NCBI RefSeq assembly: GCF_006345805.1
Contig: NC_042998.1
Location: forward strand, 183,892,001-183,956,000
Direction: 5' to 3'
Length of the DNA: 64,000 bases
Source: Octopus sinensis
Taxonomy: Eukaryota
Below, piece by piece: positions 6,320 to 57,018 of this stretch (position 1 is its first letter; each line of letters starts with the position of its first letter). The translations under genes were made by a program, and so were the position numbers. The notes below the pieces were generated by a model, which was not told where the DNA came from, did not search any database, and saw only the letters and a list, made by a program, of their open reading frames with translations.

Positions 6320-6364
<45 letters not shown>

Positions 6365-7599: not shown

Positions 7600-8565
7600 G
7601 CAAAGAGAATCTCAACGGAATTTGAACTCAGAAAGTGAAGAACCGGGTAAAAATGCAGCTAAATATTTTTGTCTGACGTGCTAACGATTCTGCAGGCTAT
7701 AATAATTCTTTCTCCTATAGGCGCAAGGCCTGAAATTTGGGGGAAGGGGTTAAGTCAATAAAATCGACCCCCCAGTACTCAACTGCTGCTTATTTTACCG
7801 ATCCCGAACAGATAAAAGGCAAAGTCAACCTCGGCGGGATTTGAACTCAGAACGGAGCAGCAGACGAATTACCTATTTCTTTACTACCCACAAGGGGCTA
7901 AACACAGAGAGGACAAACAAGGACAGACAAACGGATTAAGTGGATTATATCGACCCCAGAGCGTAACTGGTACTTATTTAATCGACCCCGAAAGGATGAA
8001 AGGCAAAGTCGACCTCGGCGGAATTTGAACTCAGAACGGAGCAGCAGACGAATTACCACTAAGCATTTCGCCCGGTGTGCCAACGATTCTGCCAGCTCGC
8101 TGGCTATAATAATAATCCTTTCTACTATAGGCACAAGGCCTGAAATTTTTTTTTTTGGGTGGGGGGGGGCAGTCGATTAGATCGACGCCAGTACGCAACT
8201 GGTACTTTTTATCGAATTTGAACTCAGAACATAACGATGGGCGAAATGCAGCTAAGAATTTCGTCCAGCGTGCTAACGATTCTGCCAGCTCACCGTCTTT
8301 ATAATAATAATAATAATTATTATTATTATCATTTCTTTACTACCCACAAGGGGCTAAACACAGAGAGGACAAACAAGGACAGACCGACGGATTAAGTCGA
8401 TAATATCGACTCCAGTGCGTAACTGGTACTTATTTAATCGACCCCGAAAGGATGAAAGGCGAAGTCGACCTCGGCGGAATTTGAACTCAGAACGTTGCGG
8501 CAGACGAAATACGGCTACGCATTTCGCCCGGCGTGCTAACGTTTCTGCCAGCTCGCCGCCTTTCA
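7600..8565 (-). mobile_element. Cluster of a second tRNA-SINE family
   Basis: Repeated block gaccccgaaaggatgaaaggcaaagtcgacctcggcggaatttgaactcagaac plus a tRNA-like head. Same family as 15845-16825 and 40448-40885. Confidence 0.85.
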
Positions 8566-8612
<47 letters not shown>

Positions 8613-15460: not shown

Positions 15461-15844
15461 ACTAAAGAAAAGTTTTTGAAATTACTAAACGGAAACATTT
15501 AGATAGTTAAAACAGGTTTAAGCTCGTACTGACCCAGGCCATGACAAATTTAATACCACCCGAAGAAAACAATTGTGTTTCGGAAAACGGTAATAAACCT
15601 TATTGCCCTGGTTAAATCCTCTAACACCACCTGTATTCTTTACTCTTTTGTTTTTGTCATCCATTTCAAAAGAATATCCGGTTCACTTTGCTGTTGGTGT
15701 CGAAACATGGCTAACGTTACAATTGAAAATTTGACGTGTAGGAAAAAAAGTCTTTAGACTACATCCCTAAAAAGCTACTTGACTGCTTAGTTCAGCTACA
15801 TAGTTCAGTTACATTGTTTCCTCTCTGTATTTACTATAACTTCT

Positions 15845-16825
15845 TATTTCTTTATTGCCCAACAGGGGGCTAAACACAGAGAGTACAAACAATGATAGAT
15901 AACCGGATTAAGTCGACCATATCGACCTCAGTGCGTAACTGGTACTTAATTTATCGGCCCCGAAAGGATGAAAGGCAAAGTTGACCTCGGTGGAATTTGA
16001 ACTCAGAACGTAACGGCAGATGAAATACTTATTTCTTTACTGCCCACAAGGGGCTACACGCAGAGGGGACAAACAAAGACAGACAAACGGATTAAGTCGA
16101 TTCCATCGACCCCAGTGCGTAACTGGTACTTAATTTATCGGCCCCGAAAGGATGAAAGGCAAAGTCGACCTCGGCGGAATTTGAACTCAGAACGTAGCGG
16201 CAGACGAAATACCTATTTCTTTACTACCCACAAGGGGCTACACACAGAGGGGACAGACAAGGACAGACAAACGGATTAAGTCGATTACATCAACCCCAGT
16301 GCGTAACTGGTACTTAATTTATCGATCCCGAAAGGATGAAAGGCAAAATCGACCTCGGTGGAATTTGAACTCAGAACGTAACGGCAGATGAAATACCTAT
16401 TTCTTTACTGCCCACAAGGGGCTAAACACAGAGGAGACAAACAAGGTCAGACAGACGAATTAAGTCGGCCATATCGATCCCAGTGCGTAACTGGTACTTA
16501 ATTTATCGACCCCGAAAGGATGAAAGGCGAAGTCGACCTCGGTGGAACTTGAACTCAGAACGTAACGGCAGACGAAATACCTATTTCTTTACTTCTAAAT
16601 TCAAAATTCACAAGGGGCTAAACACAGAGAGGACAAAGAAGGACTGACAAACGGATTAAGTCGATTCCATCGATCCCAGTGCGTAACTGGTACTTAATTT
16701 ATCGACTTCGAAAGGATGAAAGGTAAAGTCGACCTCGGCGGAATTTGAACTCAGAACGTAACGGCAGACGAAATACGGCTACGCATTTCGCCCGGCGTGC
16801 TAACGTTTCTGCCGGCTCGCCGTCT
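15845..16825 (-). repeat. SINE-derived tandem repeat: one head plus five 184-bp body units
   Basis: Anchor tatttcttta recurs at 15845, 16030, 16214, 16398 and 16582. A single tRNA-like head lies at about 16775-16825. Confidence 0.9.
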
Positions 16826-17173
16826 TTACTATAACTTCTGCAATGGCCTCTGCTACTTGTAGCTAACTGGGAATCTTGATATTTCCACTCAAGAATTTCC
16901 AACCTATTCGTCCTTCCTCCACTCATCAATCACTCTTATCTTGTTCATCCCCCTCCCTTGACCCAGCGTTAAGAACAGCGCTCAGTCTCTCCTTCCAGGA
17001 ATGTCGGTACTAGGGCCTACGAAATACATGAGCATTGCTCTTTCATCTCATTATGAATGTGTGTGTATGTATGTATGTATGTATGTATGTATGTATGTAT
17101 TATCAATGTATGTGGTATGTATGTATATGTGTATGTATGTGTGTGTACATACATACATACATACATACATACA

Positions 17174-21244: not shown

Positions 21245-21933
21245 ACACACACATATATATATATATACACTGTCGTTTTGCTACGCTGTTATTATTGAAA
21301 GCCTCCTCTGATATGTGGTATTTGGTGAATAAAGGAGTTTGATGTCGCTACCCTCATTTGCACCTCCTGTCGCGATGTAGGTTCATCTGGGACTCTCGAC
21401 AGGAAGAGGTCCAGTTTTGATTTGAAAACACCTATATCCACTTTGTATAGGTCCCTCGGGCTCTTTGGGAGTATATTAAAAAGCCGCAGGACACTGAAAC
21501 CCGGGTTGTTGCAAGAACTGTTCCTGAATCGTGATGGCATTGCTGGGATCTTTGGCACTGTGCAGTGTCGACCCGTTCGGCATTGGTATAGCTTTCAATG
21601 TCAAAATTTGGCACAGTTCCTTCCAGATGTATATTACTGCATACCTCTCCCGCCTTCGCTCCAGGGAGTAGAGTCTTAGCTGTTTCAGTCATTCCCAGTA
21701 GCTGAGCTGTTGCAAGGAGACGATCTTCTTTGTGAAGGTCTGCTGCTAATTTTACACCGTTGGATGACCATAGCTGAGAGCAGTAGTCCAGGTGGCTGAG
21801 GACGAATGTCCTCCAGAGGACCATCATGGTTTCTTTCTTTCTGGTTCTGAACGTTCTCGGGATCCAACAAGCCAGTCGTTTGCACTTTGTGGCCATCCTG
21901 GTAATGTGCACTCGGAAAGTGGTATCATATTTG

Positions 21934-21935
<2 letters not shown>
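21245..21935 (-). mobile_element. CR1/L2-like LINE 3' fragment
   Basis: ..RLACWIPRTFRTRKKETMMVLWRTFVLSHLDYCSQLWS.. matches the RT C-terminal region. Frameshifted. Confidence 0.8.
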
Positions 21936-21965
<30 letters not shown>

Positions 21966-22057
21966 CATACATACATACATACATACATACATACATACAT
22001 ACAAACATGCATACATACATGCCTATATACACACACACAGACACAGACACACACATA

Positions 22058-22117
<60 letters not shown>

Positions 22118-22199
22118 TGCATGTATGTATGTATACATATATTGTTGTATTTGGGGATGGTCATATTGCCAGTTTAGCCAATAATAACACAAGCACTAT

Positions 22200-23636
22200 A
22201 TATTTGGTGTTCACTTGCTTCAGCTCTATTTTATATTAATTGTATTTCGGCCAGAGTTCTTTCGTCACATTTCTGTGACCTCATCAGTGGTCCTTTGCTT
22301 TCGTCTTTCTTTTTTGTGTGTCTCTCCTTACTAATGGTTTGCCATTTTGTATTCCTATCGTATGTCTTTATTTGCGCATGCGTATATCTCAGTGAGTGTA
22401 TATGTTTAGTGTGTGTGTGTGTGTGGAGGGGGGAATGTGCCTGCCTTATCAGTATCCCCTGTTTATGCACGTTCGTTTGATTTACTTTTATTTATTTTAT
22501 TCATTTGTTTATATTTACTTACTTTTTCTTTCTTTCTATTTTTTGTTTCAATTTTAATTTAATCTAATTAATTTTGTTTATGTGTATAGTTATTTAATTC
22601 CATTTATTTATCTGTGTATTGTATTATATTCATATTATTATCAGTTTATAGGGATCTTATTCTGTCACAGGTTGTGGAATGTTGGGGTGGGGTGCTAGTG
22701 TTCCATTCTAGTTATTCTATTCTGGCAAGGTTTATCTTCTATAATGTGCGTAGCTTCCGTAATTTGTTTAAGCGTTGCGTATGTTCTATATGTGGACAAG
22801 ATTTTAACTTCTATGTTGTTGAGTGAGTCCCAGTGTTCCTGCTCGGCGTGCTGGTACAGAACCGATGACCTCTTCTCTTCCTTAAGTTCCCTCCAATGCT
22901 CATTTACCCGCTCTCCTAGGCTTCGTCCTGTCTCCCCAACGTACGTCGTCTTGTTACTGCACCGTACCTCTGTACATTTTATACTATAGACTACATTCCT
23001 AGCTTTACAGTTTGTTTGTGGGCTAAATCTAGATACAATACAGTTCCTATCAGTACAGGGGGTTCTACTAAAAGGGTAGGTTCTACCGATTAGGGATTTG
23101 ATAGGGTTACCTGGCCTTTCTTCAACCTTAATTCTTAGCTTAAGTTTATCTAGGGCCCTTCTAAAGCAGTACGCCAGTTCACCTCTAGGAGTAGTGTCGA
23201 CGAACATGATACGCTGGTATTTGTGGCTATCACACTATGAGTTGGTCTTCCCTATTTTCTTCTGAGTCCTTTCAATTGTGTTCCATAACTTGCTCCTATA
23301 GAGTAGGCAAATCCCACTCCTCTCATTACGTATGATGGTTTCAAATTTCCTCATGGCTCCTTTGTATACTCTGATCCTTTCTCTATGCCTGTACCCTGAG
23401 AACTGCATGCAGTGAACGAAGTGTTGTATGTGTCGCTTTAACTCTGTAGGGTCGCACATGCGGGACACATTTCTCATTACTCTAATGAGGTCTGCCATCA
23501 ATATATTGAATTTGGTATTGTCCGAGATAGCTGAGTTCCGTTGGATCAGGTATTTGGAGGCCATAGGTTTGGCATAGTGTGAATGAAGGATTTGGATTTT
23601 ATTATTCACCCTTTCCAGCCAGAGTTCTGTATCCAG
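22200..23636 (-). mobile_element. Penelope-like element 3' half (RT thumb, GIY-YIG, 3' UTR)
   Basis: HYAKPMASK.., then RNVVYSIKC..TYVGETGRSLGERVNEH (GIY-YIG). Homologous to 9400-11155. Confidence 0.9.
22249..22293 (-). ncRNA. Minimal hammerhead motif in the Penelope 3' UTR
   Basis: ggacca-CTGATGA-G-GTCAC agaaat GTGAC-GAAAG AA CTC-tggcc. Confidence 0.6.
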
Positions 23637-23799
23637 TTCTTCGTTGACTTGTTTCACCGCTGCGAAAGGTACCGTTCGTTTAGGCTTAAATACCAGTATA
23701 GCGTTTTCTTTCACTTGAAACTTCGCCTTTGTTTTGGTGCAAAGGCCCAATTCCTCAGAAAAAACTTCAGGAAAAATTTGTTTTAATTACTCTTTTACT

Positions 23800-27168: not shown

Positions 27169-27396
27169 GAGAGAATGAAGGATGAGAGAAATAAGGTGGA
27201 GGACTGATAGAAGTGAGAGAGAGAGAGAGGCTGAATGTTTATGAAAGTATCGCATACTATTCTACTTACAAGCTGATTTTTGAAGAATTTGATTTCTTTT
27301 TTGTAATCTTAGAACTCGTCACGTTTCCTATTTACAAAATTTGGTAATATAAACAAATGCAACAAGCGTATTAATCGCCAACCAACCAATCAGGTA

Positions 27397-30300
27397 AGCT
27401 GTCTGTGCTTATATTTGAGAAAACAACAATGTCTAGAGTTTTGGAAATTCCAAGAAATTGTGCTTAGATTTCCGGCTACCTAAATAGTTTCGTTTGCTGT
27501 CTGTGCTTATGTTTGAGAAAACAACAATGTCTAGAGTTTTGGAAATTCCAAGAAATTGTGCTTAGATGTCCGGCTACCTAAATAGTTTGGTTAGATGTTT
27601 GTGGTTATATTTGAAAAAACAACTATGTCTAGTGTTTTGGAAATTCCAAGAAATTGTGCTTAGATGTCCGGCTACCTAAATAGTTTCGTTTGCTGTGTGT
27701 GCTTATATTTGAGAAAACAACAATGTCTAGAGTTTTGGAAATTCCAAGAAATTGTGCTTAGATGTCCGGCTACCTAAATAGTTTAGTTAGATGTTTGTGG
27801 TTATATTTGAGAAAACAACAATGTCTAGAGTTTTGGAAATTCCAAGAAATTGTGCTTAGATGTCCGGCTACCTAAATAGTTTGGTTAGATGTTTGTGGTT
27901 ATATTTGAGAAAACAACAATGTCTAGAGTTTTGGAAATTCCAAGAAATTTTGCTTAGATGTCCGGCTACCTAAATAGTTTGGTTAGATGTTTGTGGTTAT
28001 ATTTGAGAAAACAACAATGTCTAGAGTTTTGGAAATTCCAAGAAATTTTGCTTAGATGTCCGGCTACCTAAATAGTTTGGTTAGATGTTTGTGGTTATAT
28101 TTGAGAAAACAACAATGTCTAGAGTTTTGGAAATTCCAAGAAATTGTGCTTAGATGTCCGGCTACCTAAATAGTTTGGTTAGATGTTTGTGGTTATATTT
28201 GAGAAAACAACAATGTCTAGAGTTTTGGAAATTCCAAGAAATTGTGCTTAGATGTCCGGCTACCTAAATAGTTTGTTTAGATGTTTGTGGTTATATTTGA
28301 GAAAACAACAATGTCTAGAGTTTTGGAAATTCCAAGAAATTTTGCTTAGATGTCCGGCTACCTAAATAGTTTGGTTAGATGTTTGTGGTTATATTTGAGA
28401 AAACAACAATGTCTAGAGTTTTGGAAATTCCAAGAAATTGTGCTTAGATGTCCGGCTACCTAAATAGTTTGGTTAGATGTCTGTGCTTATATTTGAGAAA
28501 ACAACAATGTCTAGAGTTTTGGAAATTCCAAGAAATTGTGCTTAGATGTCCGGCTACCTAAATAGTTTAGTTAGATGTTTGTGGTTATATTTGAGAAAAC
28601 AACAATGTCTAGAGTTTTGGAAATTCCAAGAAATTGTGCTTAGATGTCCAGCTACCTAAATAGTTTGGTTAGATGTCTGTGCTTATATTTGAGAAAACAA
28701 CAAAGTCTAGAGTTTTGGAAATTCCAAGAAATTGTGCTTAGATGTCCGGCTACCTAAATAGTTTCGTTTGCTGTGTGTGCTTATATTTGAGAAAACAACA
28801 ATGTCTAGAGTTTTGGAAATTCCAAGAAATTGTGCTTAGATGTCCGGCTACCTAAATAGTTTGGTTAGATGTTTGTGGTTATATTTGAGAAAACAACAAT
28901 GTCTAGAGTTTTGGAAATTCCAAGAAATTGTGCTTAGATGTCCGGCTACCTAAATAGTTTGGTTAGATGTTTGTGGTTATATTTGAGAAAACAACAATGT
29001 CTAGAGTTTTGGAAATTCCAAGAAATTGTGCTTAGATGTCCGGCTACCTAAATAGTTTGGTTAGATGTTGTGGTTATATTGAGAAAACAACAACGTCTAG
29101 AGTTTTGGAAATTCCAAGAAATTGTGCTTAGATGTCCGGCTACCTAAATAGTTTGGTTAGATGTTTGTGGTTATATTTGAGAAAACAACAATGTCTAGAG
29201 TTTTGGAAATTCCAAGAAATTGTGCTTAGATGTCCAGCTACCTAAATAGTTTGGTTAGATGTTTGTGGTTATATTTGAGAAAACAACAATGTCTAGAGTT
29301 TTGGAAATTCCAAGAAATTGTGCTTAGATGTCCGGCTACCTAAATAGTTTCGTTTGCTGTGTGTGCTTATATTTGAGAAAACAACAATGTCTAGAGTTTT
29401 GGAAATTCCAAGAAATTGTGCTTAGATGTCCGGCTACCTAAATAGTTTGGTTAGATGTTTGTGGTTATATTTGAGAAAACAACAATGTCTAGAGTTTTGG
29501 AAATTCCAAGAAATTGTGCTTAGATGTCCGGCTACCTAAATAGTTTAGTTAGATGTTGTGGTTATATTTGAGAAAACAACAATGTCTAGAGTTTTGGAAA
29601 TTCCAAGAAATTGTGCTTAGATGTCCGGCTACCAAAATAGTTTAGTTAGATGTTGTGGTTATATTTGAGAAAACAACAATGTCTAGAGTTTTGAAATTCC
29701 AAGAAATTGTGCTTAGATGTCCGGCTACCTAAATAGTTTGGTTAGATGTTTGTGGTTATATTTGAGAAAACAACAATGTCTAGAGTTTTGGAAATTCCAA
29801 GAAATTGTGCTTAGATGTCGGCTACCTAAATAGTTTGGTTAGATGTTTGTGGTTATATTGAGAAAACAACAATGTCTAGAGTTTTGGAAATTCCAAGAAA
29901 TTTTGCTTAGATGTCCGGCTACCTAAATAGTTTGGTTAGATGTTTGTGGTTATATTTGAGAAAACAACAATGTCTAGAGTTTTGGAAATTCCAAGAAATT
30001 GTGCTTAGATGTCGGCTACCTAAATAGTTTGGTTAGATGTTTGTGGTTATATTTGAGAAAACAACAATGTCTAGAGTTTTGGAAATTCCAAGAAATTGTG
30101 CTTAGATGTCCGGCTACCTAAATAGTTTGGTTAGATGTTTGTGTTATATTTGAGAAAACACAATGTCTAGAGTTTTGGAAATTCCAAGAAATTGTGCTTA
30201 GATGTCCGGCTACCTAAATAGTTTGGTTAGATGTTTGTGGTTATATTTGAGAAAACAACAATGTCTAGAGTTTTGGAAATTCCAAGAAATTGTGCTTAGA

Positions 30301-33300
30301 TGTCCGGCTACCTAAATAGTTTCGTTTGCTGTGTGTGCTTATATTTGAGAAAAAACAATGTCTAGAGTTTTGGAAATTCAAGAAATTGTGCTTAGATGTC
30401 CGGCTACCTAAATAGTTTGGTTAGATGTTTGTGGTTATATTTGAGAAAACAACAATGTCTAGAGTTTTGGAAATTCCAAGAAATTGTGCTTAGATGTCCG
30501 GCTACCTAAATAGTTTGGTTAGATGTTTGTGGTTATATTTGAGAAAACAACAATGTCTAGAGTTTTGGAAATTCCAAGAAATTGTGCTTAGATGTCCGGC
30601 TACCTAAATAGTTTGGTTAGATGTTTGTGGTTATATTTGAGAAAACAACAATGTCTAGAGTTTTGGAAATTCCAAGAAATTGTGCTTAGATGTCCGGCTA
30701 CCTAAATAGTTTGGTTAGATGTTTGTGGTTATATTTGAGAAAACAACAATGTCTAGAGTTTTGGAAATTCCAAGAAATTGTGCTTAGATGTCCGGCTACC
30801 TAAATAGTTTGGTTAGATGTTTGTGGTTATATTTGAGAAAACAACAATGTCTAGAGTTTTGGAAATTCCAAGAAATTGTGCTTAGATGTCCGGCTACCTA
30901 AATAGTTTGGTTAGATGTTTGTGGTTATATTTGAGAAAACAACAATGTCTAGAGTTTTGGAAATTCCAAGAAATTGTGCTTAGATGTCCGGCTACCTAAA
31001 TAGTTTGGTTAGATGTTTGTGGTTATATTTGAGAAAACAACAATGTCTAGAGTTTTGGAAATTCCAAGAAATTGTGCTTAGATGTCCGGCTACCTAAATA
31101 GTTTGGTTAGATGTCTGTGCTTATATTTGAGAAAACAACAATGTCTAGAGTTTTGGAAATTCCAAGAAATTGTGCTTAGATGTCCGGCTACCTAAATAGT
31201 TTGGTTAGATGTCTGTGGTTATATTTGAGAAAACAACAATGTCTAGAGTTTTGGAAATTCCAAGAATTGTGCTTAGATGTCCGGCTACCTAAATAGTTTA
31301 GTTAGATGTTTGTGTTATATTTGAGAAAACAACAATGTCTAGAGTTTTGGAAATTCCAAGAAATTGTGCTTAGATGTCCGGCTACCTAAATAGTTTAGTT
31401 AGATGTTTGTGGTTATATTTGAGAAAACAACAATGTCTAGAGTTTTTGAAATTCCAAGAAATTGTGCTTAGATGTCCGGCTACCTAAATAGTTTGGTTAG
31501 ATGTTTGTGGTTATATTTGAGAAAACAACAATGTCTAGAGTTTTGGAAATTCCAAGAAATTGTGCTTAGATGTCCGGCTACCTAAATAGTTTGGTTAGAT
31601 GTTTGTGGTTATATTTGAGAAAACAACAATGTCTAGAGTTTTGGAAATTCCAAGAAATTTTGCTTAGATGTCCGGCTACCTAAATAGTTTGGTTAGATGT
31701 TTGTGGTTATAATTGAGAAAACAACAATGTCTAGAGTTTTGGAAATTCCAAGAAATTGTGCTTAGATGTCCGGCTACCTAAATAGTTTGGTTAGATGTCT
31801 GTGCTTATATTTGAGAAAACAACAATGTCTAGAGTTTTGGAAATTCCAAGAAATTGTGCTTAGATGTCCGGCTACCTAAATAGTTTAGTTAGATGTTTGT
31901 GGTTATATTTGAGAAAACAACAATGTCTAGAGTTTTGGAAATTCCAAGAAATTGTGCTTAGATGTCCAGCTACGTAAATAGTTTGGTTAGATGTCTGTGC
32001 TTATATTTGAGAAAACAACAATGTCTAGAGTTTTGGAAATTCCAAGAAATTGTGCTTAGATGTCCGGCTACCTAAATAGTTTCGTTTGCTGTGTGTGCTT
32101 ATATTTGAGAAAACAACAATGTCTAGAGTTTTGGAAATTCCAAGAAATTGTGCTTAGATGTCCGGCTACCTAAATAGTTTGGTTAGATGTTTGTGGTTAT
32201 ATTTGAGAAAACAACAACGTCTAGAGTTTTGGAAATTCCAAGAAATTGTGCTTAGATGACCGGCTACCTAAATAGTTTGGTTAGATGTTTGTGGTTATAT
32301 TTGAGAAAACAACAATGTCTAGAGTTTTGGAAATTCCAAGAAATTGTGCTTAGATGTCCGGCTACCTAAATAGTTTGGTTAGATGTTTGTGGTTATATTT
32401 GAGAAAACAACAATGTCTAGAGTTTTGGAAATTCCAAGAAATTGTGCTTAGATGTCCGGCTACCTAAATAGTTTGGTTAGATGTTTGTGGTTATATTTGA
32501 GAAAACAACAATGTCTAGAGTTTTGGAAATTCCAAGAAATTGTGCTTAGATGTCCGGCTACCTAAATAGTTTGGTTAGATGTTTGTGGTTATATTTGAGA
32601 AAACAACAATGTCTAGAGTTTTGGAAATTCCAAGAAATTGTGCTTAGATGTCCGGCTACCTAAATAGTTTGGTTAGATGTTTGTGGTTATATTTGAGAAA
32701 ACAACAATGTCTAGAGTTTTGGAAATTCCAAGAAATTGTGCTTAGATGTCCGGCTACCTAAATAGTTTGGTTAGATGTCTGTGCTTATATTTGAGAAAAC
32801 AACAATGTCTAGAGTTTTGGAAATTCCAAGAAATTGTGCTTAGATGTCCGGCTACCTAAATAGTTTAGTTAGATGTTTGTGGTTATATTTGAGAAAACAA
32901 CAATGTCTAGAGTTTTGGAAATTCCAAGAAATTGTGCTTAGATGTCCAGCTACGTAAATAGTTTGGTTAGATGTCTGTGCTTATATTTGAGAAAACAACA
33001 ATGTCTAGAGTTTTGGAAATTCCAAGAAATTGTGCTTAGATGTCCGGCTACCTAAATAGTTTCGTTTGCTGTGTGTGCTTATATTTGAGAAAACAACAAT
33101 GTCTAGAGTTTTGGAAATTCCAAGAAATTGTGCTTAGATGTCCGGCTACCTAAATAGTTTGGTTAGATGTTTGTGGTTATATTTGAGAAAACAACAACGT
33201 CTAGAGTTTTGGAAATTCCAAGAAATTGTGCTTAGATGACCGGCTACCTAAATAGTTTGGTTAGATGTTTGTGGTTATATTTGAGAAAACAACAATGTCT

Positions 33301-36300
33301 AGAGTTTTGGAAATTCCAAGAAATTGTGCTTAGATGTCCGGCTACCTAAATAGTTTGGTTAGATGTTTGTGGTTATATTGAGAAAACACAATGTCTAGAG
33401 TTTTGGAAATTCCAAGAAATTGTGCTTAGATGTCCGGCTACCTAAATAGTTTGGTTAGATGTTTGTGGTTATATTTGAGAAAACAACAATGTCTAGAGTT
33501 TTGGAAATTCCAAGAAATTGTGCTTAGATGTCCGGCTACCTAAATAGTTTGGTTAGATGTTTGTGGTTATATTTGAGAAAACAACAATGTCTAGAGTTTT
33601 GGAAATTCCAAGAAATTGTGCTTAGATGTCCGGCTACCTAAATAGTTTGGTTAGATGTTTGTGGTTATATTGAGAAAACAACAATGTCTAGAGTTTTGGA
33701 AATTCCAAGAAATTGTGCTTAGATGTCCGGCTACCTAAATAGTTTGGTTAGATGTTTGTGGTTATATTTGAGAAAACAACAATGTCTAGAGTTTTGGAAA
33801 TTCCAAGAAATTTTGCTTAGATGTCCGGCTACCTAAATAGTTTGGTTAGATGTTTGTGGTTATATTTGAGAAAACAACAATGTCTAGAGTTTTGGAAATT
33901 CCAAGAAATTGTGCTTAGATGTCCGGCTACCTAAATAGTTTGGTTAGATGTCTGTGCTTATATTTGAGAAAACAACAATGTCTAGAGTTTTGGAAATTCC
34001 AAGAAATTGTGCTTAGATGTCCGGCTACCTAAATAGTTTAGTTAGATGTTTGTGGTTATATTTGAGAAAACAACAATGTCTAGAGTTTTGGAAATTCCAA
34101 GAAATTGTGCTTAGATGTCCGCTACGTAAATAGTTTGGTTAGATGTCTGTGCTTATATTTGAGAAAACAACAATGTCTAGAGTTTTGGAAATTCCAAGAA
34201 ATTGTGCTTAGATGTCCGGCTACCTAAATAGTTTCGTTTGCTGTGTGTGCTTATATTTGAGAAAACAACAATGTCTAGAGTTTTGGAAATTCCAAGAAAT
34301 TGTGCTTAGATGTCCGGCTACCTAAATAGTTTGGTTAGATGTTTGTGGTTATATTTGAGAAAACAACAATGTCTAGAGTTTTGGAAATTCCAAGAAATTG
34401 TGCTTAGATGTCCGGCTACCTAAATAGTTTGGTTAGATGTTTGTGGTTATATTTGAGAAAACAACAATGTCTAGAGTTTTGGAAATTCCAAGAAATTGTG
34501 CTTAGATGTCCGGCTACCTAAATAGTTTGGTTAGATGTTTGTGGTTATATTTGAGAAAACAACAATGTCTAGAGTTTTGGAAATTCCAAGAAATTGTGCT
34601 TAGATGTCCGGCTACCTAAATAGTTTGGTAGATGTTTGTGGTTATATTTGAGAAAACAACAATGTCTAGAGTTTTGGAAATTCCAAGAAATTGTGCTTAG
34701 ATGTCCGGCTACCTAAATAGTTTGGTTAGATGTTTGTGGTTATATTTGAGAAAACAACAATGTCTAGAGTTTTGGAAATTCCTAGAAATTGTGCTTAGAT
34801 GTCCGGCTACCTAAATAGTTTGGTTAGATGTTTGTGGTTATATTTGAGAAAACACAACGTCTAGAGTTTTGGAAATTCCAAGAAATTGTGCTTAGATGTC
34901 CGGCTACCTAAATAGTTTGGTTAGATGTTTGTGGTTATATTTGAGAGAAAACAACAATGTCTAGAGTTTTGGAAATTCCAAGAAATTGTGCTTAGATGTC
35001 CAGCTACCTAAATAGTTTGGTTAGATGTTTGTGGTTATATTTGAGAAAACAACAATGTCTAGAGTTTTGGAAATTCCAAGAAATTGTGCTTAGATGTCCG
35101 GCTACCTAAATAGTTTGGTTAGATGTCTGTGCTTATATTTGAGAAAACAACAATGTCTAGAGTTTTGGAAATTCCAAGAAATTGTGCTTAGATGTCCGGC
35201 TACCTAAATAGTTTCGTTTGCTGTGTGTGCTTATATTTGAGAAAACAACAATGTCTAGAGTTTTGGAAATTCCAAGAAATTGTGCTTAGATGTCCGGCTA
35301 CCTAAATAATTTAGTTAGATGTTTGTGGTTATATTTGAGAAAACAACAATGTCTAGAGTTTTGGAAATTCCAAGAAATTGTGCTTAGATGTCCGGCTACC
35401 TAAATAGTTTGATTAGATGTTTGTGGTTATATTTGAGAAAACAACAATGTCTAGAGTTTTGAAAATTCCAAGAAATTGTGCTTAGATGTCCGGCTACCTA
35501 AATAGTTTAGTTAGATGTTTGTGGTTATATTTGAGAAAACAACAATGTCTAGAGTTTTGGAAATTCCAAGAAATTGTGCTTAGATGTCCGGCTACCTAAA
35601 TAGTTTGGTTAGATGTTTGTGGTTATATTTGAGAAAACAACAATGTCTAGAGTTTTGGAAATTCCAAGAATTGTGCTTAGATGTCCGGCTACCTAAATAG
35701 TTTGGTTAGATGTTTGTGGTTATATTTGAGAAAACAACAATGTCTAGAGTTTTGGAAATTCCAAGAAATTGTGCTTAGATGTCCGGCTACCTAAATAGTT
35801 TGGTTAGATGTTTGTGGTTATATTTGAGAAAACAACAATGTCTAGAGTTTTGGAAATTCCAAGAAATTGTGCTTAGATGTCCGGCTACCTAAATAGTTTG
35901 GTTAGATGTTTGTGGTTATATTTGAGAAAACAACAATGTCTAGAGTTTTGGAAATTCCTAGAAATTGTGCTTAGATGTCCGGCTACCTAAATAGTTTGGT
36001 TAGATGTTTGTGGTTATATTTGAGAAAACAACAACGTCTAGAGTTTTGGAAATTCCAAGAAATTGTGCTTAGATGTCCGGCTACCTAAATAGTTTGGTTA
36101 GATGTTTGTGGTTATATTTGAGAAAACAACAATGTCTAGAGTTTTGGAAATTCCAAGAAATTGTGCTTAGATGTCCGGCTACCTAAATAGTTGGTTAGAT
36201 GTTTGTGGTTATATTTGAGAAAACAACAATGTCTAGAGTTTTGGAAATTCCAAGAAATTGTGCTTAGATGTCCGGCTACCTAAATAGTTTGGTTAGATGT

Positions 36301-39300
36301 CTGTGCTTATATTTGAGAAAACAACAATGTCTAGAGTTTTGGAAATTCCAAGAAATTGTGCTTAGATGTCCGGCTACCTAAATAGTTTCGTTTGATGTGT
36401 GTGTGCTTATATTTGAGAAAACAACAATGTCTAGAGTTTTGGAAATTCCAAGAAATTGTGCTTAGATGTCCGGCTACCTAAATAATTAGTTAGATGTTTG
36501 TGGTTATATTTGAGAGAAAACAACAATGTCTAGAGTTTTGGAAATTCCAAGAAATTGTGCTTAGATGTCCGGCTACCTAAATAGTTTGATTAGATGTTTG
36601 TGGTTATATTTGAGAAAACAACAATGTCTAGAGTTTTGAAAATTCCAAGAAATTGTGCTTAGATGTCCGGCTACCTAAATAGTTTAGTTAGATGTTTGTG
36701 GTTATATTTGAGAAAACAACAATGTCTAGAGTTTTGGAAATTCCAAGAAATTGTGCTTAGATGTCCGGCTACCTAAATAGTTTGGTTAGATGTTTGTGGT
36801 TATATTTGAGAAAAAAACAATGTCTAGAGTTTTGGAAATTCCAAGAAATTGTGCTTAGATGTCCGGCTACCTAAATAGTTTGGTTAGATGTTTGTGGTTA
36901 TATTTGAGAAAACAACAATGTCTAGAGTTTTGGAAATTCCAAGAAATTGTGCTTAGATGTCCGGCTACCTAAATAGTTTGGTTAGATGTTGTGGTTATAT
37001 TTGAGAAAACAACAATGTCTAGAGTTTTGGAAATTCCAAGAAATTGTGCTTAGATGTCCGGCTACCTAAATAGTTTGGTTAGATGTTTGTGGTTATATTT
37101 GAGAAAAAACAATGTCTAGAGTTTTGGAAATTCCAAGAAATTGTGCTTAGATGTCCGGCTACCTAAATAGTTTGGTTAGATGTCTGTGCTTATATTTGAG
37201 AAAACAACAATGTCTAGAGTTTTGGAAATTCCAAGAAATTGTGCTTAGATGTCCGGCTACCTAAATAGTTTCGTTTGCTGTGTGTGCTTATATTTGAGAA
37301 AACAACAATGTCTAGAGTTTTGGAAATTCCAAGAAATTTTGCTTAGATGTCCGGCTACCTAAATAGTTTGGTTAGATGTTTGTGGTTATATTTGAGAAAA
37401 CAACAATGTCTAGAGTTTTGGAAATTCCAAGAAATTGTGCTTAGATGTCCGGCTACCTAAATAGTTTGGTTAGATGTTTGTGCTTATATTTGAGAAAACA
37501 ACAATGCCTAGAGTTTTGGAAATTCCAAGAAATTGTGCTTAGATGTCCAGCTACCTAAATAGTTTGGTTAGATGTTTGTGGTTATATTTGAGAAAACAAC
37601 AATGTCTAGAGTTTTGGAAATTCCAAGAAATTGTGCTTAGATTTCCAGCTACCTAAATAGTTTGGTTAGATGTTTGTGCTTATATTTGAGAAAACAACTA
37701 TGTCTAGAGTTTTGGAAATTCCAAGAAATTGTGCTTAGATGTCCGGCTACCTAAATTGTTTCGTTTGCTGTGTGTGCTTATATTTGAGAAAACAACAATG
37801 TCTAGAGTTTTGGAAATTCCAAGAAATTGTGCTTAGATGTCCGGCTACCTAAATAGTTTGATTAGATGTTTGTGGTTATATTTGAGAAAACAACAATGTC
37901 TAGAGTTTTGAAAATTCCAAGAAATTGTGCTTAGATGTCCGGCTACCTAAATAGTTTAGTTAGATGTTTGTGGTTATATTTGAGAAAACAACAATGTCTA
38001 GAGTTTTGGAAATTCCAAGAAATTGTGCTTAGATGTCCGGCTACCTAAATAGTTTGGTTAGATGTTTGTGGTTTATTTGAGAAAACAACAATGTCTAGAG
38101 TTTTGGAAATTCCAAGAAATTGTGCTTAGATGTCCGGCTACCTAAATAGTTTGGTTAGATGTTTGTGGTTATATTTGAGAAAACAACAATGTCTAGAGTT
38201 TTGGAAATTCCAAGAAATTGTGCTTAGATGTCCGGCTACCTAAATAGTTTGGTTAGATGTTTGTGGTTATATTTGAGAAAACAACAATGTCTAGAGTTTT
38301 GGAAATTCCAAGAAATTGTGCTTAGATGTCCGGCTACCTAAATAGTTTGGTTAGATGTTTGTGCTTATATTTGAGAAAACAACAATGTCTAGAGTTTTGG
38401 AAATTCCAAGAAATTGTGCTTAGATGTCCGGCTACCTAAATAGTTTGGTTAGATGTTTTTGGTTATATTTGAGAAAACAACAATGTCTAGAGTTTTGGAA
38501 ATTCCAAGAAATTGTGCTTAGATGTCCAGCTACCTAAATAGTTTGGTTAGATGTTTGTGGTTATATTTGAGAAAACAACAATGTCTAGAGTTTTGGAAAT
38601 TCCAAGAAATTGTGCTTAGATTTCCAGCTACCTAAATAGTTTGGTTAGATGTTTGTGCTTATATTTGAGAAAACAACTATGTCTAGAGTTTTGGAAATTC
38701 CAAGAAATTGTGCTTAGATGTCCGGCTACCTAAATAGTTTGGTTAGATGTTTGTGCTTATATTTGAGAAAACAACAATGTCTAGAGTTTTGGAAATTCCA
38801 AGAAATTGTGCTTAGATGTCCGGCTACCTAAATAGTTTGGTTAGATGTCTGTGCTTATATTTGAAAAAACAACTATGTCTAGAGTTTTGGAAATTCCAAG
38901 AAATTGTGCTTAGATTTCCAGCTACCTAAATAGTTTGGTTAGATGTTTGTGGTTTATTTGAGAAAACAACAATGTCTAGAGTTTTGAAAATTCCAAGAAA
39001 TTGTGCTTAGATTTGCAGCTACCTAAATAGTTTGGTTAGATGTTTGTGCTTATATTTGAGAAGACAACAATGTCTAGAGTTTTGGAAATTCCAAGAAATT
39101 GTGCTTAGATGTCCGGCTACCTAAATAGTTTCGTTTGCTGTGTGTGCTTATATTTGAGAAAACAACAATGTCTAGAGTTTTGGAAATTCCAAGAAATTGT
39201 GCTTAGATGTCCGGCTACCTAAATAGTTTGGTTAGATGTCTGTGCTTATATTTGAAAAAACAACTATGTCTAGAGTTTTGGAAATTCCAAGAAATTGTGC

Positions 39301-40081
39301 TTAGATTTCCAGCTACCTAAATAGTTTGGTTAGATGTTTGTGGTTATATTTGAGAAAACAACAATGTCTAGAGTTTTGGAAATTCCAAGAAATTGTGCTT
39401 AGATTTGCAGCTACCTAAATAGTTTGGTTAGATGTTTGTGCTTATATTTGAGAAGACAACAATGTCTAGAGTTTTGGAAATTCCAAGAAATTGTGCTTAG
39501 ATGTCCGGCTACCTAAATAGTTTCGTTTGCTGTGTGTGCTTCTATTTGAGAAAACAACAATGTCTAGAGTTTTGGAAATTCCAAGAAATTGTGCTTAGAT
39601 GTCCGGCTACCTAAATAGTTTGGTTAGATGTCTGTGCTTATATTTGAAAAAACAACTATGTCTAGAGTTTTGGAAATTCCAAGAAATTGTTCTTAGATTT
39701 CCAGCTACCTAAATAGTTTGGTTAGATGTTTGTGGTTATATTTGAGAAAACAACAATGTCTAGAGTTTTGGAAATTCCAAGAAATTGTGCTTAGATTTGC
39801 AGCTACCTAAATAGTTTGGTTAGATGTTTGTGCTTATATTTGAGAAAACAACAATGTCTAGAGTTTTGGAAATTCCAAGAAATTGTGCTTAGATGTCAGG
39901 CTACCTAAATAGTTTCGTTTGCTGTGTGTGCTTCTATTTGAGAAAACAACAATGTCTAGAGTTTTGGAAATTCCAAGAAATTGTGCTTAGATGTCCGGCT
40001 ACCTAAATAGTTTGGTTAGATGTTTGTGGTTATATTTGAGAAAACAACAATGTCTAGAGTTCTGGAAATTCCAAGAAATTG
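27397..40081. repeat. Satellite array of about 129 copies of a 98-bp monomer
   Basis: Monomer tgcttagatgtccggctacctaaatagtttggttagatgtttgtggttatatttgagaaaacaacaatgtctagagttttggaaattccaagaaattg. The period is confirmed (atgtctagag at 27821 and 27919). One XbaI site per unit and no ORFs. Confidence 0.99.
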
Positions 40082-42122
40082 CACTCAAAACATTCTTCAT
40101 CTAAGAACGCAGCTTGAAAACAATATTTTGTTTATTCTTTCATCTGCAAATCCAGATCGTCATTTTATAATCTCAAATGACTTAACTTCTTTTCCACGAA
40201 ACATTTTCACACGATAATGCCATTTTTTATTTTAAATTTTATTATCAAAACTAAATTTTTTCGTTAAATATGTTGGTGGGTAAAAATGATGCTGTTGTTG
40301 ATGTTGGGAGAGACAGTAATACGATGATGGAGCAAGCAGTAGGATAAGAGGTAAAGAGATGGTGGCGGTCCTAGTGATGAGGGGACAAGTGCTGGTGCTG
40401 TTGGGGACGGTAGTGATCATGGCGGTGACGGCAATATTGTAAACAAACGGCGGCGAGCTGGCAGAAACGTTAGCATGCCGGGCGAAATGCGTAGCCGTAT
40501 TTCGTCTGTCGTTACGTTCCGAGTTCAAATTCCGCCGAGGTCGACTTTGCCTTTCATCCTTTCGGGGTTGATAAATTAAGTACCGGTTATGTACTGGGGT
40601 CGATGTAATCGACTTAATCCCTTTGTCTGTCCTTGTTTGTCCCCTCTATGTTTAGCCCGTTGAGGGTAATAAAGAAATAAGAAATGTTAGCACGCCGGGC
40701 GAAATGCTTTGTGGTATTTCGTCCGCCGCTGCGTTCTGAGTTCAAATTCCGCCGAGGCCGACTTTGCCTTTCATTTTTTCGGGCTCGATAAATTAAGTAC
40801 CAGTTACGCACTGGAGTCGATGTTATCGACTTAATCCCTTTGTTTGTCCCCTCTATGTTTAGCCCCTTGTAGGTAATAAAAAACAAATATTGTAAACAAA
40901 CTACAATGCTGCTGGGTTGTACTAGGGATTAGGGTCAGGGTTGTGGTATATCAGCTTAAAGAGTTCGTGAGGTCGTAATAGGTTTTGCGTGTAGAAAGTG
41001 GCAGAAGTGGTTGTAAAAATGGAGGCTGAGCTTAAAGTACCATACTACATTCAATTGATATAATACAGTGTGATTCAATACTCGGAATACTTCCGAGATC
41101 CAATACATTCTAAATTAAACAAATTACAACAATCAAATTGAATGGTTAATGAAGAGACTTCAGTTTTATCGGATGGTTAATTAATAAACATACCGGTCTT
41201 TGTTTCTTTGCTTCGATGTATTAAATTCGCTATACAGTAATTGCGGTTAATTATTTTGCTGACAAATAGGATCGATTGAAAGAAGATAATTATTACTAAT
41301 GTATTATAGACACCATGTTCTGTGTATGACTTTAAACTGTATTCGGTAGTGGAGCCCTGCTTCAGAAGTGCCAGAGTTCTGAGAGGTGCTGAACTAACTT
41401 TTAACCACTATTTTCCAGGCGTACTCTGACTCGGAGTAATAGTACCTGGTAGGGTCCCAGTTAGGGGTTAATTAACATATCATGAAATTGCTTTCATCAA
41501 CACCGTCACATTTTCTTCACAAGTCCAGTAGCGAAAGGTAAAGAAACAACGGGGACAGATAGAAGATGCTACTGGAAGTCTTCAGCTTTGACCCTTCACA
41601 TAGGCAACCATGGTCGTTTGCTGAACAATCAATCATTGAAGTGACGATAGATCAGATCGGTAGCCACTACACACATATTTTTTATCTTCTTGTTTCTTTG
41701 TGTCCCTTTCTGTAGAAGAGCGTAGACTCGAAACGTAAAAGACATTTTGTATTCCTGAGCGTTATACTAATACATCTGTTTGTTTTCTACACCACCTGTC
41801 TTCGTCTTTTGTTTTTTCGTGAACTTTCCCCTCTAATATTATAGATACCATAAAGCAAAACATCAGATTTATGAAAAAGCAAGGAACATTTTATTGTGTA
41901 CAGTTTCTGTTTTAATCATATGCCGTTAAGCAAACTCTCGTACAAACAAGTTTAAAGTAATAAAATCACATTTTCAACAACGTTAGACCGTGGAAACTAA
42001 TTTTCATTATATTTGGGTTGTCGATCACGAAAGAATATTAAATTTGAGCATCTTAACTGCTTAAGGAACAACGCAAATGCAACAATCATATTAAACGACA
42101 ACCAACCAATCAACTAACCAAC
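40082..42122 (+). repeat. Copy A of a tandemly duplicated macro-unit of about 1.6-2 kb (flank of the array)
   Basis: Colinear with 43129-44750 apart from copy-specific insertions. Confidence 0.9.
40448..40885 (+). mobile_element. Dimeric SINE insertion specific to copy A
   Basis: 15-bp TSD aatattgtaaacaaa (40433-40447, 40886-40900). The empty site is present in copy B (about 43515-43530). Confidence 0.9.
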
Positions 42123-42193
42123 TTTAATAATGGAAGGCAATGTTTTCGATATCAGAGGAATATCGTTTCCTTCCATTAACTTCTTGTTCTTTA

Positions 42194-42560
42194 TGTAGTT
42201 CAGGCTTTCGGCAGGCGAAGAGAAAAGACTTCAAATACAACTACTATTTACAACTGGTTTATTTACAGGAAAGGTGAAAGGTGCTGCTCTCAGCTACCAT
42301 CTTAAGCTCCGATAGTGTGGGCGCATTGCCTCCAGCGATAGACAGGCAGAAAACCACAGCCAGTGCTGCTGTGTTGGGTGGCCGAAGAAGAGAACTGGTC
42401 TGAATCGGTTTCTCGTTTATATAGTTTTCTCAATTGCGAGACTCGTTGTGATCTCGCGCATGGCAAATGGATGCAGGTGAGGTCTCGCCCCAGTCTCGGA
42501 GATGGCAATAGCTGCCGCGGGATCTCATCCAATATGGCACAAACTGCTTGTGCCGCTACA
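42194..42560 (-). mobile_element. Solo-LTR-like element
   Basis: TGTAG..CTACA termini and aataaa on the - strand. Related to 56633-57018. No clear TSD. Confidence 0.55.
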
Positions 42561-43008
42561 AAGGATGAGTTGGTCCTGGATGGGTGCTTCACAATTCCAT
42601 ACATAGTTCATGGAAGAAAAAGGCGAAGACAAGATCTCTCCGAACAAATAACAATAATAATTTATTTCGCCTGAATAAACATTTCATCTCTGGACATCGG
42701 TAGCCTGGACGCCTTGGAGTGGAAGCAGCTGGGTTGGTAGCTAGACACAAAAATACGAAGATATTTTTCACAGATTCGCAACGTCGCTCGCCGTCAGAAT
42801 TCCAGCTCCACGGAGCTGGTCTAAGTTGCGTCCTGTCTGGTCAGAAGCTGGGGCCGAAGAGGATGAATGGGTGGTCAAACCTAGCTGCTGCTGATGATGA
42901 TTGCGCATGCGCATAAGTGGCTTCCGTCAGATCTCCGGAAAGCTCTAATTCTATGCGCATGCGTGGTTGAATGTTCCACAGTGGCGTCTAGAACCAGGCG
43001 TCACTACA

Positions 43009-44750
43009 CAACTAACCAACCACCTATGGGTGCTCAGATGTCCGGCTACCTAAATAGTTTGGTTAGCTGTCTCTGCTTACATTTGAGAAAACAACAATAT
43101 CTAGAGTTCTGGAAATTCCAAGAAATTGCACTCAAAACATTCTTCATCTAAGAACACAGCTTGAAAACAATATTTTGTTTATTCTTTCATTTGCAAATCC
43201 AGATCGTCATTTTATAATCTCAAATGACCTAACTTCTTTTCCACGAAACATTTTCACACGATAATGCCATTTTTTATGTTAAATTTTATTATCAAAACTA
43301 AATTTTCTCGTTAAATATGTTGGCGGGTAAAAATGATGCTGTTGTTGATGTTGGGAGAGACAGTAATACGATGATGGAGCAAGCAGTAGGATAAGAGGTG
43401 GATTATGTTGGTGATGGTGGTGGAGTTAGAGGTAAAGAGAAGGTGGCCGTCCTAATGATGAGCGGGCAAGTGCTGGTGCTGTTGGGGATGGTACTGATGA
43501 TGGCGGTGACGGCAATATTGTAAACAAACTACAATGCTGCTGGAATGTCACAGTAAACACGACAGAATGGTTGTACTAGGGATTAGGGTCAGGGTTGTGG
43601 TATATCAGCTTAAAGAGTTCGTGAGGTCGTATTAGGTGTCGTGTATAGAAAGAGGCAGAAGTGATTGTAAAAACGGAGGCTGAGCTTAAAGTACCATACT
43701 ACATTCAATTGATATAATACAGTGTGATTCAATACTCGGAATACTTCCGAGATCCAATACATTCTAAATTAAACAAATTACAACAATCAAATTGAATGGT
43801 ATTGAATGGTTAATGAAGAGACTTCAGTTTTATCGGATGGTTAATTAATAAACTTACCGGTCTTTGTTTCTCTACTCCGATGCATTAAATTCGTTATACA
43901 GTAATTGCGGTTAATTATTTTGCTCACAAATAGGATCGATTGAAAGAATACAATTGTTACTAATGTATTATAGACACCATGTTCTGTGTATGACTTTAAA
44001 CTGCATTCGGTAGCGGAGTCCTGCTTCTGAAGTTCCAGAGTTCTGAGAGGTGCTGAACTAACTTTTAACCGCTATTTTCCCAGGCGTACTCTGACTCGGA
44101 GTAATAGTACCTGGTAGGGTCCCAATTAGGGGTTAATTAACATGTCACGAAATTGCTTTCGGAAAAAAGGATACTCACAGACACCAAACGGATCCTTTAG
44201 CTCTTTAGTTGCCCATCAATAAGAAGGCAACTTCACACAACTCCTACATCCTTATAACTAATGGATTCATGACTCATGTTGCACAAGGACTAGAGAGTGG
44301 GACTGGTTCTGAACCAAACTATGCCCACTATAATAATATTCATTGTGCAGGTTCTGCAAACCAAGACTATCATCAACACCGTCAAATTTTCTTAACAAGT
44401 CCAGTAGCGACAGGGAAAGAAACAACGGGGACAAATAGAAGATGCTACTGGAAGTCTTCAGCTTTGACCCTTCACATAGGCAACCATGGTCATTTGCTGA
44501 ATCCTCAATCATTGAAGCGACGAGAGTCTAATATTATAGACACCATAAAGCAAAACATCAGATTTATGAAAAGGCAAGGAACATTTTATTGTGTACAGTT
44601 TCTGTTTTAATCATATGCCGTTAAGCAAACTCTCGTACAAACAAGTTTAAAGTAATAAAATCACATTTTCAACAAATTTACATTATATTTGGGTTGTCGA
44701 TCACGAAAGAATATTAAACTTGAGCATCTTAACTGCTTAAGTAACAACGC
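43009..44750 (+). repeat. Copy B of the macro-unit (unexpanded)
   Basis: Matches 40082-42070 and carries its own insertion of about 210 bp (about 44161-44370). Confidence 0.9.
43031..43128 (+). repeat. Single-copy 98-bp progenitor of the satellite monomer
   Basis: Exactly 98 bp (tgctcag..aagaaattg), with 6 differences from array variant C and 8 from the major variant. It is followed by the same flank (cactcaaaacattc) as the array end. Confidence 0.93.
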
Positions 44751-48530: not shown

Positions 48531-49781
48531 CGAGAGGGTGGGGGCTGAAAAGTTCATAGGCTGACTATGAAGAAGTGATGCTAGAGCTGTGAAATTTTGC
48601 ATGCATTAATGTTAACACTTCTTATTAATAACTACATTGTTTTTCTTTTCTTTTCTTTTTCAGGTAAATTGACATCTGACTGTTCAGAGTAGATTTCAAA
48701 AGTAACTGGTAGCAACTTTTCTTGAAATTCAACAAAATTTGGCATCGTGGTCTTATCAAGTATCTGCAGAAAAAGGGCTAACCCCCATGACATTTATGCT
48801 GACATGGTTGATACATAAGGGGATGACACTCCAGCTTTATCAACAGCAGAAAAGTGGGCAGTTGGATTTTTGAGGAGAAGGGAGAGTCTTAACGATGACC
48901 CAAGGTCTAGACGTCCTGCAACACCGAGGAAAACATTGGTTGTGTTCATCACACGTTGATGGATGACAGGCGATTGACTATAAATCAAATAGCCAATGCT
49001 ATTAGCATATCCCCTGAGAGAGTTGAGAATATTTTGTACACTAGATTTGGCATGACGAAGATTTCTGCTCGGTGATACCTACGTCTTCTGATACCTGATC
49101 AAAGCGCACCAGGCTGATCACATCAAGGGAAAAAATCTGAGATTGTTTGAGGCAGACCCGGCTGGTTTCTTTGAACATTTCTTAAGCCATGATGAATGTT
49201 GGGTTCATCACTTTGAGCCAGAAACAAGGAGATAATCCATTCAGTGGAAACAGCCATCCTCACCTGCACCAAAGAAGGCCGAGGTTGTTTCATCTGCAGG
49301 GAAGGTGCTGGCCTCAATATTTTGGGATGTAAAAGGCATTGTGTTTATCTTTGAAAGGCCCACACCATCACTGGAGAGTCAATTTGCTGAGGCAGTTTCG
49401 AAAGATTTTCATCAGGACACTGCTCCATCACATAACTCCTTGGTTTCAATGGCTGCTGTGTGTGACTTTGGCTTTGAACTGGTTTTGATCACTGTCCCTA
49501 TTCTCCCGATTTGGCATCATTTGACTATAATCTGTTCTCCAGCATGAGAAAACACTTGGCTGGGAACCAGTATTGCAGTGATGATGATGTCATGTCTGTT
49601 GTTGATAAACCTTTTGACGAACAAGATGAAAGCTTCTTCAACAATGGAATCCAAACACTGCAACACTAATGGAAGAAGTGTGCAGACCATAAGGGAGGTT
49701 GTGTTGAAAAAAATAAGCCTCATTTGATCACATTCCACGAGAATGTCTTGGTCAGCCTATGAACATTACAGCCAACCCTTG
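48531..49781 (+). mobile_element. Decayed mariner (Hsmar2-like), full span
   Basis: Imperfect TIRs cgagagggtgggggctgaaaagttcataggctgac / gtcagcctatgaacattacagccaacccttg with TA TSD. Motifs DECWVHHFEPE, GKVLASIFWD and YSPDLA. Confidence 0.88.
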
Positions 49782-56134: not shown

Positions 56135-56632
56135 CTGCAATACAACAGTAAAATTAAAATTCTTCCGTAGCTGTCAAATATACTGATACAAGTGACAGCT
56201 TGATGAAATTAAATACAAAAATCTCCCATATGTACATATTATGACCAGTTTGAAATACCACCAACTGAAATTAAAAATGCAATCAGCTTCAAGCAAAATT
56301 TGGCTTCAAGATTTAGGAACATTTTCTAATTGTCACTATTCAAAAATTTCAGTATTTAACCGTTTAGTACTGGCCCCAGTAATCTGTTTTATGTTAAAAC
56401 TGACCAGATCCAACCTCTCATGTATCCCCTATAATGTTATTCTAAGAATGAACAATCATATCTTTGAAATATTGAAGCTACAAGACAATGCAGAATTAAT
56501 TCCAAACAATGTGTATCAATAAGCATTATATTTCACTAAGAAACCTAAATACTAAAGGGTTAAAGGTTTATAATGGAATGGAAGGTTTATGATACCTGTG
56601 GAGTATCTCCTTCTCCAATTATAATCATTTCT

Positions 56633-57018
56633 TGTATTTTCAAGGGTCTGGAATATGAAGAAGTTCACAAGCAGAGTACAATTCAATAGCCATTTATTCA
56701 CAGAGCTCTCGTTCATGAGGTTTGCTCTCAGTGACCATCTTTATAGCAGCACGTGGTTTGTCTTAACTCCGTACACATGAGGTTCATTACTTCTGGAGAT
56801 AAGCATGTGGAGTCAGAGTGGGACAAGAGTCCACCGTGAGCTGCTGGCTGTGCAGTGTTTCTCAGCACAAGCATGAGAAGAAAATGAGAGAGTGAATGTC
56901 GTTGTTTCTTGCTTAAATACTGGTTGCCAGCGAGAATTTCATTGTTGTCTCATGCATGGCAAATGGTTACAGGCGAGATCTCATTCAAAATGGTGCTGGC
57001 TTCTTGTGCCTCGCTACA
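56633..57018 (-). mobile_element. Solo-LTR-like element
   Basis: TGTA..CTACA ends. Shares catggcaaatgg..cttgtgcc..gctaca with 42194-42560. Confidence 0.5.

Follow-up and report, generated by a model that had tools for sequence, protein, structure and literature searches.

In a 64-kilobase (kb) stretch of the Octopus sinensis genome (64,000 nucleotides (nt) of contig NC_042998.1, positions 183,892,001 to 183,956,000 of the forward strand; hereafter, the window), two adjacent paralogous units differ in that one contains a tandem array of some 130 copies of a 98-nt monomer, spanning 12.7 kb, and the other contains that monomer once. The best explanation, which we hold with moderate confidence, is that a unit carrying one copy of the monomer (M) was duplicated in tandem and that M was then amplified locally in the first copy (U1), while the second (U2) remained single-copy. 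The unamplified progenitor of a tandem repeat is usually lost or unrecognizable (PMC3389668), and the origin of repeats with long monomers is hard to study; here an earlier segmental duplication appears to have preserved a sister copy.

Two units head to tail

The units stand head to tail, U1 at 27354-42073 and U2 at 42074-44749, and hold the following features:

27354-27392 (+), left flank X, the first 39 nt of U1, abutting the array; 35/39 identical to 42074-42112
27393-27460 (+), truncated first monomer of the array, 68 nt, monomer positions 31-98
27461-40081 (+), 129 full 98-nt monomers; 56 distinct sequences, three main subfamilies
40082-42073 (+), right flank of U1, collinear with 43129-44749
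40449-40885 (+), dimeric retroposon resembling a short interspersed nuclear element (SINE), U1 only; 16-nt target-site duplication AATATTGTAAACAAAC at 40433-40448 and 40886-40901
42074-42112 (+), left flank X', the first 39 nt of U2, matching 27354-27392
42123-43008 (+), dispersed element of 886 nt, U2 only; perfect 12-nt target-site duplication CAACTAACCAAC at 42111-42122 and 43009-43020
43021-43030 (+), end of the left flank, 10 nt, CACCTATGGG, without relation to the monomer; together with ACTAACCAAC, the 20 nt absent from U1
43031-43128 (+), solo 98-nt monomer, exactly 1.0 copy; profile match over model positions 1-98, E = 3.5e-30
43129-44749 (+), right flank of U2, with small indels and 211 additional nt (44159-44369)

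A prediction made earlier from this DNA (the original prediction) had proposed head-to-tail units from a match between the sequence upstream of the array and the end of the larger unit. The match and the orientation hold (35/39, E = 3e-8 in the window), with the boundaries corrected to 27354-27392 and 42074-42112 and the unit boundary placed at 42073|42074. Likewise, the flank said to recur at 43129-44750 does so when the window is compared with itself, in four collinear blocks up to 44750. Similarity stops abruptly outside 27354 and past 44749/44750. In the indel-free blocks of a global alignment, 60 substitutions over 1323 nt separate the flanks (95.5 % identity; Kimura two-parameter distance ~0.047), and the alignment includes 9 indel events. 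Each unit starts with CAAATG... (CAAATGCAAC) and finishes with ...AACAACG (GGAACAACG), the host flanks being ...ATATAAA and CTGTAAG..., and the outer and inner breakpoints have one C in common, a 1-nt microhomology. Collinear, head-to-tail, sharp at its outer edges, and with one inner junction, the pair is a segmental tandem duplication.

The position of the monomer within the units is equally precise. The array ends on the right at ...GTTCTGGAAATTCCAAGAAATTG|CACTCAAAAC (also written ...CCAAGAAATTG|CACTCAAAAC), with about 2 kb of flank behind it, and the identical junction is found at 43128|43129, both as originally described. Since this right junction is the same in U1 and U2, the monomer already occupied its exact position in the common ancestor of the two units. 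The junctions inside the array, AAGAAATTG|TGCTTAG, connect both ends of the solo monomer, again in agreement with the earlier description.

Each unit has also received an insertion of its own. The empty site of the SINE-like insert of U1 is retained in U2, at ~43513-43528. In U2, the 886-nt insert separates the 39-nt left flank from the side of the solo monomer; its first bases are also the start of its homology to a diverged paralog at 56568-56990 (nhmmer E = 1.8e-14), and this coincidence, together with the 12-nt direct repeat, identifies the insert as a transposon that entered U2. The private insertions with their target-site duplications, taken with flanks that are 95.5 % identical, argue that the duplication is old and is neither an assembly stutter nor a haplotype artifact.

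The array and the single monomer

Tandem Repeats Finder reports one array, 27393-40081, with a period of 98, 129.7 copies, 96 % matches, and a score of 23644. We sliced it into monomers in the phase of the solo monomer, which yields 129 full monomers of 96-100 nt (27461-40081), preceded by the truncated one (27393-27460). The 129 copies originally counted are thus borne out by both procedures, with one truncated copy in addition, and the array itself stands, although its start moves from the 27397 first given to 27393. The commonest of the 56 sequence types is found 35 times, and the mean pairwise difference among array monomers is 3.5 %. Columns 31-53 hold 62 % of all minor-state cells, and it is there that the three main subfamilies are defined. 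With monomers that are head-to-tail, constant in length, and highly similar, this is a tandem array of the satellite type. Its G-over-C skew is constant, at +0.27 to +0.31 over 28000-40000, which is the composition of the monomer itself.

A megablast search for long, near-identical blocks within the array gave nothing usable, and block duplications were then read from strings of monomer types. The string DCJBGK at monomers m045-050 is repeated at m055-060, groups of the types DC.B, HC, and FM recur, and a 4-monomer repeat lies at the 3' end of the array; in all, segmental duplications of 4, 10, and 12 monomers are found. These variant strings and multi-monomer blocks are as expected if unequal exchange took place in several registers. 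A substitution-free twin exists for 107 of the 129 monomers, and the mean nearest-neighbor difference is 0.24 %, about one-tenth of the ~2.3 % per lineage seen in the flanks, indicating that the present copies of the array are much younger than the duplication of the units. An array that already has three subfamilies, duplications of 4, 10, and 12 monomers, and a rearranged left edge was, however, not "caught at birth," as the original prediction had it; that phrase is too strong.

Besides the array, the window contains just one full-length match to a profile of the monomers, the solo monomer at 43031-43128, and the same profile finds nothing monomer-like adjoining it. A weak match at 48718-48782 (11.9 bits) was rejected because it equals the level of shuffled controls. 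Against the closest array type, the solo monomer shows 6/98 differences, the 92/98 identity first claimed, and against the array consensus it shows 8/98. At four of the eight differing columns (5, 45, 52, and 73), no array monomer has the base of the solo monomer. Its bases at three others (columns 37, 43, and 48) are minority states in the array and occur together only in the two leftmost monomers (chance 1.2e-4); its base at column 83 occurs only in the last array monomer. The array therefore has a homogenized interior and divergent edge monomers, as under maintenance by unequal exchange. In arrays kept by unequal crossover, edge monomers are poorly homogenized (PMC5139131), and because they escape homogenization, the solo-like bases at the two edges can be taken as founder states. 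With the four edge states ancestral, the reconstructed founder differs from the solo monomer at 4/98 positions (4.1 %), matching the divergence of the flanks.

We suggest on this basis that the solo monomer is a sister of the founder of the array, parted from it by the duplication of the units, and was not recently copied from the interior of the array. Its bases are retained only in edge monomers, which makes it founder-like and not a recent spin-off.

The left edge of the array is less simple than the right. The left flank of U1 runs directly into monomer position 31, so that, relative to U2, ~50 nt are gone from U1, a loss overlooked in the original prediction: 20 nt belong to the left flank (ACTAACCAAC CACCTATGGG) and 30 nt to the start of the monomer. 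The absence of these 20 + 30 nt requires an extra event at this edge. One speculative thought is that the blunt left junction could mark a break repaired by integration of a rolling-circle-amplified monomer concatemer. The left breakpoint of the array, 27392|27393, sits 2 nt inside the 12-nt target (42111-42122) used by the transposon of U2; this overlap may be a coincidence or may point to a locally fragile site.

A proposed history and its alternatives

These observations can be arranged in a sequence of events. The starting unit would have been ~2.2 kb long, with a single M of 98 nt between a left flank of ~59 nt and a right flank of ~2 kb. It was duplicated in tandem, with the 1-nt microhomology at its breakpoints and presumably with a single M, and U1 and U2 then diverged by ~4.5 %, each acquiring its own transposon. 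In U1, M would have undergone a first tandem doubling, possibly by slippage or unequal exchange between GTGCTCA (43030-43036) and GCACTCA (43128-43134), an imperfect direct repeat (5/7 match) whose copies lie 98 nt apart; as a site of initiation, these repeats are suggestive only. As the variant patterns show, the array grew to ~130 copies through successive rounds of unequal exchange, with registers of 1, 4, 10, and 12 monomers; variants that arose on the way spread through the interior, and edge monomers retained founder bases. A later event in U1 would have taken away the 20 nt of left flank and the 30 nt of the first monomer, and U2 would have retained M as a single copy.

Several points count against this history. 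The monomers are slightly more diverged from the solo monomer (7-8/98) than the flanks are from one another. The four fixed differences between the solo monomer and the array may have arisen on either lineage, and a collapse in U2 would look alike. The left edge demands one additional, unexplained event. The direct repeat is weak, since a 5/7 match has a background of 3.3 % per register, or ~15 % over 5 registers. Finally, the copy number of the monomer and of the unit is that of the 64-kb window, and the length of the array is the figure of the assembly.

The original prediction held that one segment had been amplified in one copy only. The paralogous units, the shared junction, the young array, and the founder-like solo monomer all stand, and amplification confined to one unit accounts for them most parsimoniously; the further proposition that U2 never had more than one copy goes beyond what they demonstrate. 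An array of at least two monomers might already have existed before the duplication, and U2 might later have recombined down to one copy, in the manner of a solo long terminal repeat, so that the solo monomer would be a relic. We regard this as unlikely. In its favor, unequal exchange has a single copy as its absorbing state, the solo monomer joins left-edge bases (37, 43, and 48) with a right-edge base (83), as a first-by-last recombinant would, and the identity of the right junction in U1 and U2 suits this history as well. But it requires two processes, an early expansion and a complete collapse, where one is enough, and no partial or decayed monomer lies beside the solo copy. It must also accommodate four differences that are fixed in all 130 array monomers, edge monomers included; on an assumption of equal odds, the U1 lineage was probably the source of one or more of them, which is easiest if U1 was still single-copy at the time.

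We think it rather improbable that the unit is instead a dispersed mobile element, or part of one, with a variable internal array, the two units being neighboring copies and the monomer family being older and present at many loci. There is a precedent in the oyster, where Cg170 arrays and their flanks lie in Helitron-type elements with common junctions and a varying number of monomers (PMC5139131). The window itself contains another transposon with internal tandem multimers within one target-site duplication (15845-16822), and a family of moderate copy number would seldom place a third copy within 64 kb. Helitrons have the ends 5'-TC...CTRR-3', Helentrons have short terminal inverted repeats, and insertion occurs at A|T or T|T. 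By contrast, the ends of the unit are unlike 5'-TC...CTRR-3' on either strand, and the unit does not lie between A|T or T|T in its host flanks; examination of the ends and host flanks and a search for inverted repeats thus disclosed neither type of terminus. Around both units, terminal inverted repeats are absent, as is a target-site duplication, and for this reason the unit does not qualify as a pearl-like miniature inverted-repeat transposable element (MITE) either. The units abut directly, with the 1-nt microhomology at the outer breakpoints, as in a plain tandem duplication, and self-comparison and the profile find no third copy of monomer, flank, or unit in the window.

That the array length is inflated or collapsed in the assembly, or that U2 is a misplaced haplotype or misjoined copy, is very improbable: long, highly homogeneous arrays are indeed error-prone in assemblies, but ordered, non-periodic variants and block duplications are not expected from a collapsed or stuttered one, and 4.5 % substitutions, 9 indels, and private transposons are far past haplotype-level differences, so that an assembly artifact is an unlikely source of the duplication.

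Returning to duplication followed by amplification in U1, a narrower proposition is that the monomer is private to this locus, in which case the array would be a 12.7-kb satellite that arose de novo, at a single locus, from unique, non-transposon sequence. We offer this only tentatively. If it is true, the progenitor, the repeats that initiated the array, the edge monomers with their founder bases, and the succession of later events are all readable, and the locus would be among the cleanest natural records of the origin of a satellite.

The surrounding sequence and known systems

The window is eukaryotic, non-coding, and rich in repeats, with dozens of microsatellites, several SINE-like and retroelement remnants, and ~38 % G+C. 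Rfam and tRNA scans of the window returned no match, no open reading frame in the units gave a Pfam domain, and we saw no conserved reading frame there. Ten open reading frames, taken from the two units and from transposons near them, have no match in a protein collection; the frame through the solo monomer has no relative there, and a reverse-transcriptase-like frame was without a match in a protein search. The monomer folds no better than its shuffles (z = -0.46). A 20-mer of the monomer has 0 matches in metagenome, viral, and prokaryote-genome collections; an 18-mer gave 62 + 26 single matches, mostly in contigs with bacterial names, that extend only 20-23 nt and were set aside as chance. 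No function is indicated. The array is most readily seen as a by-product of replication and recombination, neutral and still turning over.

All array monomers (e.g., at 27443-27456) and the solo monomer (43111-43124) contain a palindrome, TGGAA-A-TTCCA, overlapping TTCCAAGAA. We presume a resemblance to Rel/NF-kB-type and STAT-type consensuses, which could well be chance; were it real, the array would carry ~130 such motifs.

The 886-nt insert of U2 begins with a hairpin of 13-nt arms (42128-42178) and contains a perfect inverted pair of CGCATGCGCATA (42904-42915 and 42952-42963); its only paralog in the window is diverged and partial. A SINE-like element of ~231 nt with a tRNA-like head, which is abundant in the window and which we take to resemble a SINE of the octopus genome, is present as internal multimers at 15845-16822 (-), 40449-40885 (+), and 7580-8572 (-). 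At one of these loci, a full unit and four tandem copies of its 3' 183 nt share a single 15-nt target-site duplication, TTTACTATAACTTCT (15829-15843 and 16826-16840). The halves of the dimer in U1 are only 83.6 % alike though the element was inserted after the split of U1 and U2, so it was probably dimeric already at insertion. With such multimers, the window shows tandem arrays forming by a second route, one carried by transposons.

Farther away, Penelope-like retroelement remnants occupy 21432-23750 (-), with a GIY-YIG-like motif in the reading frame at 22695-23207; this frame has only two distant relatives in a collection of 5.8 billion proteins, one of them from Logan run SRR11869390, which implies that repeats of the host genome are poorly represented there. 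The window also contains a perfect 134-nt direct repeat (4212-4345 and 4574-4707, 362 nt apart) and a 453-nt tandem dimer (92 %) at 5063-5969 with an inverted partial copy just downstream, at 6005-6364.

What we describe is a new example of a known process, a tidy but ordinary start of a satellite that is moderately interesting. Its use lies in providing a control within the same genome for the founder sequence, for the timing of amplification relative to duplication, and for the behavior of monomers at the edge and in the interior. Should a genome-wide and cross-species search confirm that the family is private to the locus, it would make a useful case for teaching and modeling and would leave current understanding unchanged. 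A literature search found no description of an octopus or cephalopod satellite.

Among models of initiation, that of Haber and Louis, as summarized in a later paper, starts between direct repeats of 5-10 bp that flank a unique segment (Haber and Louis 1998, in PMC3389668). The present locus is suggestive of the model so summarized in that an imperfect 7-nt direct repeat brackets a unique segment of 98 nt and the array junctions join the ends of that segment; it is dissimilar in that the repeat is weak (5/7). Initiation of the Taylor-Breden type, again as summarized, leaves a terminal unit that is a few nt shorter (Taylor and Breden 2000, in PMC3389668). Here, the 3' terminal unit is complete, and the 5' unit is without 30 nt, alongside the 20 nt missing from the flank, a shortening and loss that look like a separate deletion. 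The locus accords with present models for the birth and local amplification of tandem repeats (PMC3389668, PMC4935994), as it combines a single-locus array, growth by unequal exchange, and poorly homogenized edges. In the model of Ruiz-Ruano et al. (2016), dissemination of short arrays throughout the genome precedes local amplification (PMC4935994), whereas no dissemination is seen here, in a view that takes in the 64-kb window.

The arrangement recalls the mollusc Cg170 and BIV160 Helitron/Helentron elements and pearl MITEs, which also have common flanks and junctions and differ in the number of monomers (PMC5139131). Unlike them, the octopus units are without Helitron/Helentron termini, inverted terminal repeats, and target-site duplication, they are just two copies that abut directly, and 129 monomers far exceed the short internal arrays of those elements. 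Drosophila 1.688 and Rsp (PMC7403614) and Tribolium Cast (PMC11610590), examples of the euchromatic satellite blocks and paralog-specific VNTR expansions revealed by long-read assemblies, resemble it in another way: they too are homogeneous arrays on the kb scale in DNA rich in transposons and microsatellites, and copy turnover here, as in those families, is very recent. They are, however, multi-locus and spread in bursts, whereas one array and one solo monomer are known here. What sets this locus apart from models of satellite birth is that its unamplified copy survives only through an earlier segmental duplication.

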